NCBI RefSeq assembly: GCF_964204645.1
Contig: NC_134035.1
Coordinates: 62,001-126,000, forward strand
Length of the DNA: 64,000 nucleotides
Source: Tubulanus polymorphus
Lineage: Eukaryota > Animalia > Nemertea
Reading direction: 5' to 3'
The translations under genes were made by a program, and so were the position numbers. Shown in pieces: positions 10,681-16,657 of this stretch (its first letter is position 1; each line of letters starts with the position of its first letter). Below the pieces are notes generated by a model that was not told where the DNA came from, searched no databases, and worked only from the letters and a program-made list of their open reading frames with translations.

Positions 10681-13600
10681 TTATGTTGCCGCTATCTGCA
10701 AAAACCGATAAGAAAATACATTAAACATATAGAATTTTCCATTTTACTTGATAATCACAATAAAACGAGTTTGTATTTTGATTTCGGTCGGGGCGACGAT
10801 GGGTGTGCCGGACGCCAGAGCGACGATGGGTGTGCCGGACGCCGGAGCGACGAGGGGTGTGCCGGACGCCGGAGCGACGATGGGTGTGCCGGACGCCGGA
10901 GCGACGATGGGTGTGCCGGACGCCGGAGCGACGATGGGTGTGCCGGACGCCGGAGCGACGAGGGGTGTGCCGGACGCCGGAGCGACGATGGGTGTGTCGG
11001 ACGCCGGAGCGACGATGGGTGTGCCGGACGCCGGAGCGACGATGGGTGTGCCGGCCGCGCAGTTATCAGCTGAGGTAATCAAATCTAATTTACATACCTT
11101 CGCCGTGCTTCCGGTTGGCGGTTTGACTTGGAATTTTTTCTTTTCGGATTTCTTGATATCGTTCGTCGACGCCTTAACTGCGTTATCGGCGTTGAATAAA
11201 CCAACTGCGCCACCATCCAGATCGGCCAGACTACCCAGATTCGACTGACTATCAGATACGTTATCGGCTAGAGTTTGTTTCTCTTCTAACATCGCTTGCA
11301 CTTTCGGGTCGTCCAGATTCAAGTCGGCTTTTCCTTCCAGCCAAAACGTTTTCATCACACCCTTACCCTAAAATCAGAACAAGTCGAAGTAACTTGAAGT
11401 TTTACTGTAACAAATAAGGGAGGATCTTTGTTTGGGAGAAAATAGAAAATTTCTTAAATTAATTTCTTAAATTTATTATCATTTTATCAAGGAATATGAA
11501 TTGTTTCCTCGTGACCGTCATCAAATAGTGCCCTGGTCCCCAACCTTCAAAAAATCCAGGCTCCACCCTTGCTGTAAAATGCAATAATTCGGATACTTAC
11601 CTTTACTTGTACGGTTCCACGTTCTTTGACGGAGAACGGAAATCCTTCCAGTAAAACTTTAGTCGTTTCGGAGATGTGAATTTTCTGCGCTTCCGAATTG
11701 GTTTCCATTCGAGATGCGGTGTTTACAGCATCCCCGAATAGACAGTATCTGGGCATCTTTAAACCGACAACTCCGGCTACGACTGAGCCTGAGTGAGCGC
11801 CTGCGAACAGAGAAATACATGACTGTCATATTCCGAGTTTTATTAAGAGTACATACATGATCCGTGTTAGAGAATTTAAGATTCAAAGTTTCAAGTTTAA
11901 TTCGGGAACACCGCGGAACACTTGGTCAAGAATCAAGGCTTAACCCAGGACTGTGAAACTGTCGAAATCATTCCTTCAGATATGAAACTCACCAACTCGA
12001 ATGGTTACTTGTTTCTGACTGTTTGGATCTTTAATCTCGTACATAGTGGCGATCATATCTAACGCCATTTCGCTGATATAACAAGCGTGATATTTGATAA
12101 CATTCGGGACCCCTGAAGCCACCATGTACGCGTCACCGATTGTCTCAACCTGTAATAAAACGATGAGTGTATGTTTAAGTGTACTCACCGGCGCGTACGT
12201 TTATAGGTTTCCCGGAGCTCGGGTCTTTAATGTCGTTTGCCGAAGCCATCATCTCGAGCGCCATTTCGCAGATATATGCGGCGTGATACTGGCAGCGTTT
12301 CGGAGCCCCGGACGCGATCATGTACGAATCTGCGATCGTTTCCACCTGTAACAGAGGCAAGCTATTTTTGAACGCAGAAATTTTCGCAATATTTGAAAGC
12401 CCGGAAATTTTCACCCCTTAAGTGTATGCGAGAACGAATGTATTCGATCGAATTGATATCAGTGATTTTTTATCTGATGATAATTTGTTTAGAATAAGCG
12501 AAAATTTCCAGTTTTCTAATAGCCAGACTCTGCTGAATGGACACGGGATAAACACAGTTGATTGTCCCCTACAGATCAGCACTTTAGTTTCATTGAAACC
12601 AAATTGGGGTCTATATCTAGAGTACTGTATAACCCTAGCGAGATATTCACAAACCACTGAAGTCCAGCGGTTAAGTAAAGGTAACCTAGCCCCAGTTGCA
12701 CAGCTTTGACTTGTCCAAAAATGGTCCTTAATCACATTAAGACACAATGTACAATTATAATAATCAGATCCACTGTGCAACTGGATCCTGGTCACGTGGT
12801 GCTAGGCCCATGTCTTATTGTCAAACTGTCACTCTTGATAGTTTACAGATGAACTCGCGTTTTGTACGGTGTGAAGTCTTACCTTGTAAACCCTGTGCTT
12901 TTCGCTTAATGTATCGAACTTCGTGTACATCGAGTTGAGCATCGTGACCACTTGTAACGGGGTGATTTTACTACAGATTGTCGTGAATCCAACTACATCA
13001 CTGAACAACACTGTTACACATTCAAACGTCTGTCAAATATACAACATACACTTACTAGACGTCAGGGGTTGGTTTAATATGTTAACCTTTGAATTGAATC
13101 ATTATTTAATGATCAGAAATATTGACCACTTTTATCTTTAACCCCAGGGGCCAATTGCACAGTCATGACTTAAGTCGAAAAGTGGTCTTGAATCTTAAGA
13201 CTGGTCTTAAGTTGTTAGATTAGCAATAAAACTAAGTTGGTCTTAGACTGGTCTTAAGTCTAAGCCATGACTATGCAACAGGCCCCTGGAATGATTTAGA
13301 GACTTAGTGATGATTTCAACCCGGAGTTAAAAACCCAATTCGACTATGGCCATAAGTCAATCATGTGGACAATCTTTGTCACTGGAATAAAACATACCTC
13401 ACAAGTAGCGACTGGATCCTCTCCACGACGAAGCCGTTCAGCCACAGATCGCGGTATCATTTGATATAACAACTGATCGGTTCGTTTCATCTCAACGTGA
13501 AGACGCTTCATGAATTCTTCCAATTTCTTAGATTTTTGTTGTTCCTATTGAACGAATGGGTGAAATCATAATTCTTTCGGTTGTTTCGTGTTTGGCGCAC

Positions 13601-16600
13601 AATGATTTTCACACTGACAAAACAATTAATTTTCAAAGTCTGATGATGTGATTTCTGTTGATTTGTTAGTGTTTTACTTTACCTGATCAAGAGCGAGTTT
13701 CAGTTCTGCCGACTGCTGGGTACCGGCCAGAATCAAGTCACGTGACGAGTCGTGCATGCTCAAATCGTTAATGAAAAGACCGGCGTTGAACATATCATTG
13801 ATATCTTTCATTCTGTAAGATGAAGTGAAACATCTCAAATATACACTGTATGTTCTTCACCTCAATCTAATACCATATACTTACACAGGACATCCTAAGA
13901 ATATAATACTGTCCCAATCGTTCATGTACAACATTTGACCTTTGAGTTTCAAACATTTTGTGGAGCCACCGTCTGCTTCCTCACCACCATCTGATTCTCC
14001 TCCCTGCAGGAACAATACATCATCAAACATCATCAAACACCGATATTACCCAGCCCCGCCGGGATTACCCAGCCCCACCGAGATTACCCAGCCCACCGAG
14101 ATTACCCAGCCCCGCCGAGATTACCCAGCCCCGCCGAGATTACCCAGCCCCACCGAGATTACCCAGCCCCGCCGAGATTACCCAGCCCTACCGATATTAC
14201 CCAGCCCCACCGAGATTACCCAGCCCTACCGATATTACCCAGCCCTACCGATATTACCCAGCCCCACCGAGATTACCCAGCCCTACCGATATTACCCAGC
14301 CCACCGAGATTACCCAGCCCCGCCGAGATTACCCAACCCCGCCGAGATTACCCAGCCCCGCCGAGATTACCCAGCCCCGCCGTGATTACCCAGCCCCGCC
14401 GATATTACCCAGCCCCGCCGAGATTACCCAGCCCCACCGAGATTACCCAGCCCCGCCGAGATTACCCAGCCCCGCCGATATTACCCAGCCCCGCCGAGAT
14501 TACCCAGCCCCACCGATATTACCCAGCCCACCGAGATTACCCAGCCCCACCGAGATTACCCAGCCCCACGAGGACTTAGCTCCACGCAGAGTTCACTTAA
14601 CTCAATGCAGTATAGAGCTTTCACAAAGCTGAATGAATTGAGAACGAGAAGGTTGATAACTGTTTAACCTAACGCACATAACCCAAATCTATAATGATTC
14701 CTTTCAGAAATTAGGAAACCATGAAACCAACCTTTTTATCGCCATCTTCCTTTTCAGCATTTTCTTTATCTGCTTTTTCTTTTTCTGCCGCTTTCGCTTC
14801 TTTCTCTTCTTTCTCTTTTCTCTCTTTTGCCTCTTCTTGCTTTTGCTCGAGAAGTTTTCGTTTGCTCTCCCTGAGGACACGTGATAACATATTCAACGAT
14901 CAAATATCGGTTCACTCGTGCAAACGATTTCAGTTATAAGTTTAAAGTTTTGAATACATTCGACACTCGATATGCGAGCATCGATATCGTATATAATTTA
15001 CCTTCTTTCCATAACACTGGAATGTTTCTTTGACCTCCCTGTAGGTTTTGAACTGCTACCTCCTTTCATCAACGCGTTTAATTTCGCCTGCGCTTTCTCT
15101 ACGTCATCTCGCCGTCCTCCTTTTGCTACTTTACCCACACGATTTTTCTCTTCCTCAGCTGCAAATACAACGAAACTGTTTGTTGTTGTGTGGAGTTTTA
15201 ATTATTTGAACTGCTGGCCGAGGATTATTTATCACTTACCGAATTCCTTCAGATATTCTTGAAGATCTTTAACTTCTAACTTCGTTACGATTTCGAACAC
15301 GTTGTTTGTGTGCATCATCACCTATTTATCGATTAGTTTATGTATTTAGATTCAGCAGGGACCAGTTGTACAGTAGCAGCAGGGGCCAGTTGTACAGTAG
15401 CAGCAGGGGCCAGTTGTACAGTAGCAGCAGGGGCCAGTTGTACAGTAGCAGCAGGGACCAGTTGTACAGTAGCAGCAGGGGCCAGTTGTACAGTAGCAGC
15501 AGGGACCAGTTGTACAGTAGCAGCAGGGGCCAGTTGTACAGTAGCAGCAGGGACCAGTTGTACAGTAGCAGCAGGGACCAGTTGTACAGTAGCAGCAGGG
15601 GCCAGTTGTACAGTAGCAGCAGGGACCAGTTGTACAGTAGCAGCAGGGGCCAGTTGTACAGTAGCAGCAGGGACCAGTTGTACAGTAGCAGCAGGGGCCA
15701 GTTGTACAGTAGCACAGGGACCAGTTGTACAGTAGCAGCAGGGACCAGTTGTACAGTAGCAGCAGGGACCAGTTGTACAGTAGCAGCAGGGACCAGTTGT
15801 ACAGTAGCAACAGGGGCCAGTTGTACAGTAGCTGCTTATTTTGTTATAGTCGATTTATAATTTTTTATACTTACAGATTCCCAGCTGAAGCCGACAAGTG
15901 GTCGCGTCAAGTCGAAAATCTGGTTGATAGCATGACCCAACAGTTCGGGCATGACAGCCTTCAGACCATCGCCTATATACCGGACGGTCATACCACGATT
16001 GAATACTAAGTTGAACGGGAACACCTCGAAGAACACGTCTGACGGAACGGGTAAAGCATCTACTAATCGTTCAGCCTGAAGTTGGGCTGCTGTTTTGTAC
16101 GCGTGATTCGTGAAGTGCAATCGTAGAATGACGTTGATCATCGATTCTTGTACGAACTCAGACACGATCTCGATTTCTACTTCCGTGTCGTAAACAGACT
16201 TCGCCACTTGTCGAATCTGACCTTTGACGTAATGGATGAAGTTACGTCTTCGGGATCTGTAGTGAAGTGTGAGCCCGGTTTTCGATTCGTTCACGCAGAA
16301 GAAGCTAGGCGGTTTCAGTTTTGGGTAACTGAATCGTAGATATTCGTGTAGATTGTCCAGACCGTTCAGGAAATCTCGTAAATGACGTCCTAACACTTTC
16401 AACACGCCGTCGTAACCGTACTGACCGACGAAAGCGACGAATGTGACTCCCAAATCTTCTAAAACCTCCTCAACGGAGAAACCAGTCAGGTCGGACGCCG
16501 CCTCGGCCAGTGCCGGGATGTAATTCTCGTTGTAGACTTTGTGAGTGTTGAACGTAGTGAGAGGGATTCCCGCTAACTTCACAACCTGCTCCCAAATATC

Positions 16601-16657
16601 TTCACCATACTTGATTTTTACGTAATAGAAAATACCCTCTAACAATAAACCATACAT
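10681..16657 (-). CDS. Atypical soluble guanylate cyclase, Gyc-88E/beta3-like (H-NOX, PAS/H-NOBA, coiled coil, cyclase)
   Basis: Exons 15875-16657, 15240-15321, 15002-15158, 14732-14870, 13885-14003, 13683-13812, 13398-13544, 12883-13029, [12189-12345 or 11993-12149], 11601-11800, 11098-11367. The last exon is uncertain (possibly 10681-10695). Motifs: MYGLLLE start, proximal His104 (LDNLHEYL), YxSxR (YRSRR), distal Tyr143, [38 protein letters not shown]. Confidence 0.95.
10790..11056. repeat. 30-bp GC-rich minisatellite, ~9 copies, probably intronic in the sGC 3' end
   Basis: Unit GCGACGATGGGTGTGCCGGACGCCGGA-type. A good donor (AAG|gtatgt) at 11098 precedes it on the minus strand. Confidence 0.9.
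11993..12149 (-). CDS. sGC catalytic-domain exon, variant B ([52 protein letters not shown])
   Basis: ttacag acceptor, gtgagt donor, 157 nt, phase 0 to 1, open reading frame. Confidence 0.9.
12189..12345 (-). CDS. sGC catalytic-domain exon, variant A ([52 protein letters not shown])
   Basis: ttacag acceptor, gtgagt donor, 157 nt, phase 0 to 1, open reading frame. Confidence 0.85.
13145..13289. mobile_element. MITE of a window-wide family with (CA)GGNCCAGTT-like termini (PIF/Harbinger-like)
   Basis: Imperfect TIRs CAGGGGCCAATTGCACAGTCATGACTTA...TAAGCCATGACTATGCAACAGGCCCCTG. Related copies at ~12688-12790, 36923-36995, 49840-49952, 52192-52279, 55654-55786 and 55873-56030. Confidence 0.7.
14040..14570. 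repeat. 19-20-bp intronic minisatellite
   Basis: Unit CCGAGATTACCCAGCCCCG/A, ~27 copies, in an sGC intron. Confidence 0.95.
15352..15835. repeat. 24-bp intronic minisatellite, ~20 copies
   Basis: Unit CAGCAGGG(A/G)CCAGTTGTACAGTAG. Confidence 0.95.

Follow-up and report, generated by a model that had tools for sequence, protein, structure and literature searches.

Two homologous exons of 157 nt each lie side by side within the cyclase domain of a soluble guanylate cyclase gene of the nemertean Tubulanus polymorphus. The locus raises two questions: whether the two exons replace each other during splicing, and what such a choice would do to the enzyme. The exons, named 9A and 9B herein, were found in a stretch of 64,000 nt (contig NC_134035.1, positions 62,001 to 126,000), which is called the window; exon and intron coordinates below are window positions. 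A sequence-only reading of the window had proposed that the pair is mutually exclusive and swaps the active-site segment. Our main reading, with a probability of around 0.7, is that an old tandem exon duplication produced a mutually exclusive 9A/9B pair in a nemertean Gyc-88E-type gene. In this reading, 9A most likely provides a weaker or retuned face, through which the choice of subunit would, at about even odds, adjust the gain of O2-gated cGMP signalling.

The gene and its relatives

The gene is encoded on the minus strand. Exon 1 (15875-16657, 783 nt, ATG at 16657) carries the H-NOX domain and the start of HNOBA (Pfam PF07700/PF07701) and is identical to that of the RefSeq model XP_074660375.1. 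Exon 2 (15240-15321, 82 nt) and exon 3 (15002-15158, 157 nt, a low-complexity linker) were placed by RefSeq mapping. Exon 4 (14732-14870, 139 nt), a putative Glu/Lys-rich linker skipped by RefSeq, was placed by splice signals and an open frame, and a similar charged insert is present in P0334, the orthologue described below. Exon 5 (13885-14003, 119 nt), also skipped by RefSeq, carries a conserved CLKLKGQM segment and was placed by its frame and by a paralogue exon of identical length. Exon 6 (13683-13812, 130 nt) was placed by a frame check and RefSeq mapping. Exon 7 (13398-13544, 147 nt) encodes a coiled coil, and its joint to exon 8 was seen in sequencing run X3. Exon 8 (12883-13029, 147 nt; Pfam, run X3 and RefSeq mapping) opens the cyclase domain with the first metal-binding Asp (FSD). 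After 9A and 9B, exon 10 (11601-11800, 200 nt) carries the guanine-binding Cys and the catalytic Asn and Arg. Exon 11 (11098-11367, 270 nt) holds the end of the cyclase domain and a tail, as placed by the 10-to-11 joint of run X3 and by homology to the paralogue and P0334. The probable last coding piece, with the stop codon and no CAAX, is at 10681-10695. All searches were run exon by exon, and the joined model was built solely for a local reading-frame script.

The introns of the gene contain three minisatellites, at 15353-15832 (24 nt), 14038-14569 (19 nt) and 10789-11058 (27 nt). Intron 7 holds a high-copy MITE-like element (13140-13290) with a summed contig depth above 100,000. The intron before 9A holds inverted arms of 23 nt placed 69 nt apart (12681-12795), probably a second small element.

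The Pfam architecture is H-NOX, HNOBA and class III cyclase. The protein has the haem His104, the YxSxR motif and the distal Tyr143/Gln147, matching Drosophila Gyc-88E, and it lacks the beta1-type Cys78. Whichever exon 9 is used, one chain contains both metal Asp residues, the guanine Glu and Cys, and the catalytic Asn and Arg. From the haem-pocket residues, the missing Cys78 and the full catalytic set, the gene is therefore assigned by sequence as a Gyc-88E-type atypical soluble guanylate cyclase subunit. The likeness to Gyc-88E and Manduca MsGC-beta3 thus covers the three domains, the pocket residues, the missing Cys78 and a residue set capable of homodimers; the Tubulanus gene differs by its duplicated catalytic exon, and it is a putative O2 sensor. 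We know of no duplicated catalytic exon in cyclases of the Gyc-88E/MsGC-beta3 type. Gyc-88E itself senses O2 and is active as a homodimer (PMC1435932).

A close T. polymorphus paralogue, 13.4 Mb away and 76% identical in exon 1, has a single IGDAY exon, and no remnant of 9A was found in its introns. The sequence-only reading had proposed a search of relatives for both exons. An A-type exon was indeed found in P0334, but the orthologues of Lineus, Lingula, Owenia and the chiton Liolophura have one IGDAY exon each. Three metagenome orthologue contigs also have one exon, and 19 other cyclase loci in the T. polymorphus genome have one G-D exon apiece. No separate A-type gene was found in that genome. 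In Lingula anatina the same gene has duplicated independently, giving two closely related Gyc-88E-like copies on a scaffold of the same length.

Exon pair geometry, transcripts and selection

In minus-strand order, exon 8 is followed by a 537-nt intron, 9A (12189-12345), a 39-nt spacer (12150-12188), 9B (11993-12149), a 192-nt intron and exon 10. 9A is the variant IADSY copy and 9B is the canonical IGDAY copy. Both are open, both run from phase 0 to phase 1, and both have a TTACAG acceptor and a GTGAGT donor; these features, the lengths, the coordinates and the spacer had all been given in the sequence-only reading and were confirmed in the sequence. The copies share 102 of 157 nt (65%) and 29 of 52 amino acids, with no indels. 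Both match the same part of profile PF00211 (positions 54/55-103/104), and a single homologous exon of exactly 157 nt, running from phase 0 to 1, is present in the paralogue, Lineus and Lingula. These two observations indicate that the likeness is not due to chance. The pair thus consists of homologous neighbours of equal length and equal phase, as is expected of mutually exclusive exons.

The reading-frame script showed that 9A alone or 9B alone yields a protein of 781 aa. When both are joined through the canonical donor, a stop occurs at nucleotide 3 of 9B (621 aa), and when both are skipped, a stop occurs 22 nt into exon 10 (575 aa); both stops are upstream of further junctions. The proposal that including both or neither shifts the frame thus holds with the canonical donor, but not with a cryptic GTACGC donor, which keeps both in frame in XP_074660375.1.

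The spacer contains the 9A donor, a candidate branch site, a pyrimidine tract and the 9B acceptor. It had been described as shorter than other introns, and none of the 31 others measured across the cyclase genes of the T. polymorphus genome, a small sample and not a genome-wide one, is as short; the shortest were 69, 72, 73 and 81 nt. The candidate branch site, CTCAT, places its A 25 nt from the 9A donor by consensus match only. Any branch point must be within 40 nt of the 9A donor because the entire spacer is 39 nt, and this distance is below the approximately 50 nt used as the steric criterion for human exon pairs (PMC5740500). Similarly, C. elegans does not splice out introns below 40 nt (PMC4165533). 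No convincing RNA docking or selector structure was found around the pair, where only short imperfect repeats are present. A genome-unique stem of 14-15 bp was predicted at 12377-12506, just upstream of the 9A acceptor, by minimum free energy folding with no shuffle comparison; this predicted stem could cover the 9A branch region.

Three of the five tested features of tandem-duplicated mutually exclusive exons and their steric subclass were found in 9A/9B. In the proposed mechanism, tandem duplication of one 157-nt cyclase-domain exon would have created the mutually exclusive pair. Under known splicing rules, the spacer would be too short for removal, so that 9A and 9B would not be joined. Rare products with both exons or neither would be cleared by nonsense-mediated decay, the frame shift serving as a second safeguard. 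9B would be the main form, and 9A presumably a minor form limited to certain tissues or stages.

Read evidence came from assembled (Logan) contigs, in which rare variants are dropped, with one informative T. polymorphus run of low depth. Contigs of this run, X3, contain the joints 7 to 8, 8 to 9B with 9A skipped (12883 to 12149), 9B to 10 (11993 to 11800) and 10 to 11, at depth 7.5-13. All four are GT-AG joints that fall on model exon borders, and we therefore take run X3 to be RNA. The two 9B joints are those by which the sequence-only reading had proposed to recognize this isoform; for the corresponding 9A joints, the contigs have no 9A coverage. No 9A-to-10 joint was found among T. polymorphus contigs, no A-to-B joint was found among the run X3 contigs, where 9A had zero coverage, and a 2015 run (X5) contained nothing from the locus. 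The contigs show that 9B is used without 9A in T. polymorphus, and silence of 9A does not follow from them. Mutual exclusivity, as first proposed, is supported by the frame logic, by the joint that skips 9A, and by a spacer below the steric limit of 40-50 nt known from nematodes and mammals.

Selection on both copies had also been suggested. Between 9A and 9B, dN is 0.33 and dS is 1.43, a ratio of about 0.23 that supports this suggestion, and identity by codon position is 37/52, 40/52 and 24/52. The frames are free of stops despite the divergence, as had been pointed out; under neutrality, with splice sites kept in simulation, such a frame would arise with P = 0.04-0.17, which is weak evidence of selection by itself. 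With the paralogue as the third sequence, a three-way comparison placed most amino-acid change on the A branch (dN of about 0.25 compared with about 0.08 for B). Similarly, the P0334 branch length is 1.21 for the A-type exon compared with 0.15 for the remaining protein. The A-type exon evolves fast.

The best-surviving alternative is that 9A worked in the ancestor but has since fallen silent or begun to decay in T. polymorphus, with 9B alone in use. No 9A contig was found in three possible-RNA runs, the paralogue has no trace of A, and the excess of change on the A branch would also be expected of a decaying copy. However, 9A keeps an open frame, two intact splice sites and every invariant residue; dN on the A branch is well below half of its dS (about 0.7); and a minor isoform would escape contigs at depth 7-13. 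A second haplotype also has no differences in the pair: an unspliced contig of run X1 spans both exons, and its introns differ at 15 positions over about 1000 nt, 9A and 9B at none. By hand arithmetic, zero differences in 9A alone has P of about 0.1, which is weak support. Silence of 9A is considered improbable. We prefer a genuine pair that is probably both old and functional and that represents a known mechanism at a new locus.

Age of the duplication and the RefSeq model

P0334 is a protein from an intron-free contig of 2473 nt in run SRR12873395, whose source was placed among nemerteans by tree only. The IADSY-type exon of this contig is directly between the equivalents of exon 8 and exon 10. 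The IADSY variant noticed in the window is real, and another nemertean splices an exon of this type into its orthologue. In a tree without exon 9, P0334 is sister to the pair formed by the T. polymorphus gene and its paralogue (100/98), and Lineus is the next to branch off. In the exon tree, the P0334 exon pairs with 9A at 85/89 on a branch that was not starred. The best genome-wide match of the P0334 exon is also 9A (38.9 bits vs 35.6 bits).

The ADS motif occurs in two of 91 homologous segments, namely P0334 and 9A. Ala5, Ser7, Ile10 and Arg17 are jointly shared by these two alone; singly, they occur in 2, 1, 7 and 13 of 80 other segments. Since ADS is confined to 9A and P0334, the exon duplication probably predates both the species split and the duplication of the T. 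polymorphus gene. In the simplest history, the exon duplication came first and the paralogue later lost A. Three rare residues are common to 9A and 9B (Glu27, Ala34 and Lys46), and their sharing fits some conversion between the copies or a younger duplication. When P0334 was used in a region search for further A-type sequences, it retrieved only itself, and a metagenome scan with an A-type profile gave no match. A second metagenome scan found six loci, four of them with the exon segment, each in a single G-D form.

Alternatively, ADS may have arisen twice, the other nemertean having a single fast exon and the Tubulanus duplication being younger and independent. The long branch of the P0334 exon and the three rare residues common to 9A and 9B would fit such a history, and an AU test did not reject 9A and 9B as sisters (p 0.23). 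Against this, three of the four residues limited to 9A and P0334 are at columns 78-96% conserved elsewhere, the Ser7 codon is TCG in both, and at eight positions 9B and the paralogue agree with each other against 9A and P0334. Two origins are thus regarded as quite unlikely; if they were the case, exclusivity would still stand and an old conserved variant would not.

XP_074660375.1 keeps 9A and 9B together in frame by cutting 9A at the cryptic GTACGC donor at 12198, which leaves a 147-nt exon and a 49-nt intron. It also skips exons 4 and 5 in frame (258 nt together); given the conservation of exon 5, this skipping is probably an error of the model. Its C-terminal end is a non-homologous tail. 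Since the model drops conserved exons 4-5, including CLKLKGQM, and ends in this tail, its chaining of both exons is distrusted and probably wrong. Real inclusion of both exons would repeat 49 aa inside the cyclase and make it an insert form comparable to sGC alpha2i, which is dominant negative. The model does exist and is open with the full exon set (830 aa), but this form requires an intron below all 31 measured, the observed joint skips 9A, the orthologue has no duplication and the model looks partly ab initio, so this form is very improbable.

Possible roles of the variant exon

In class III cyclase dimers, each active site is built by both chains: one supplies two Asp and a phosphate-binding Arg, and its partner supplies Glu/Cys together with Asn/Arg. 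Exon 9 encodes the guanine Glu, the second metal Asp and the phosphate-binding Arg; structurally, it covers the beta2-beta3 hairpin, helix alpha3 and strand beta4. The proposed swap of the active-site segment is correct in that the segment carries these three residues, and slightly overstated in that Glu, Asp and Arg are the same in 9A and 9B. The changes affect both neighbours of the Asp, Gly to Ala and Ala to Ser, which are otherwise Gly in 96% and Ala in 93% of segments. All canonical catalytic residues are kept in 9A. The idea that Cys placement gives different redox sensitivity was not borne out: the extra Cys of 9A (exon position 18) is missing from the P0334 A-type exon, and each of the four nemertean segments has its own arrangement of Cys residues. 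An AlphaFold prediction of the A-type domain without alignment reached a pLDDT of 37 and was not used.

Gly928 of ROS-GC1, located via E925/D929, is presumably the Gly beside the second metal Asp. The substitution G928E lowers the activity of human ROS-GC1 (PMC7138296). The Gly to Ala substitution in 9A is a mild change. Four other homologues with a non-Gly residue at this position each lack another catalytic residue as well, and two Gly-Asp-Ser homologues have likewise lost another catalytic residue. Because every canonical catalytic residue survives in 9A, the variant more likely tunes or dampens activity and less likely abolishes it. From the Asp neighbours, G928E, the degenerate homologues and the fast A-type branch, our best guess, at about even odds, is that 9A forms an attenuated or retuned metal-donating face. 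A 9A subunit would then provide a weaker or differently metal-tuned face, and it is about an even bet that the choice between 9A and 9B subunits would set the gain of the O2-gated cGMP signal. The most specific form of this idea is doubtful, namely that an old nemertean exon switch decides whether one homodimer face of an O2-sensing cyclase is fully catalytic (IGDAY) or attenuated (IADSY). If it is true, splicing of a single gene would create the kind of functional asymmetry for which flies, nematodes and vertebrates rely on distinct genes for partner subunits.

The pair resembles alpha-tropomyosin 2/3, OGDH 4a/4b, and C. elegans egl-15 5B/5A and let-2 9/10, in which homologous exons of equal length encode one structural segment. 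These pairs also share a too-short intervening intron, a frame-shift safeguard and one apparently dominant copy (PMC5740500, PMC4165533). The present pair differs in its host gene and phylum, which are new, and in that the exon is in an enzyme active site across a dimer interface. Human sGC alpha2i is similar in that a soluble guanylate cyclase is alternatively spliced within its catalytic domain, with an effect on dimer activity (PMC11432225). However, sGC alpha2i carries a dominant-negative insert of 31 aa in that domain (PMC11432225), whereas 9A and 9B replace each other with all catalytic residues kept. Gyc-89Da/Db-like proteins and tunicate gcy-31-like proteins with IADGF/VADGF share substitutions beside the second metal Asp; unlike the exon choice within one gene, these are separate genes that have lost other catalytic residues.

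A literature search of partial coverage found no paper on mutually exclusive exons in soluble guanylyl cyclase. If both forms are made, this would be the first soluble guanylate cyclase found to choose between mutually exclusive exons for its catalytic core. The splicing mechanism itself is ordinary, and the finding corrects the RefSeq model. The two forms would then be a natural protein pair differing only in a segment of 52 residues. They would allow a test of what the two near-invariant neighbours of the metal-binding Asp, Gly and Ala, contribute, and of how homodimeric cyclases move towards asymmetric active sites.

Two further cyclase loci were observed in the T. polymorphus genome. A third H-NOX cyclase on the same chromosome (C11, 11.867-11.877 Mb) has a degenerate VETLGDAV segment, lacks the first metal Asp and is a candidate heterodimer partner. 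At 3.894-3.904 Mb (C5), two soluble cyclase genes in tandem form an alpha1/beta1-like pair.
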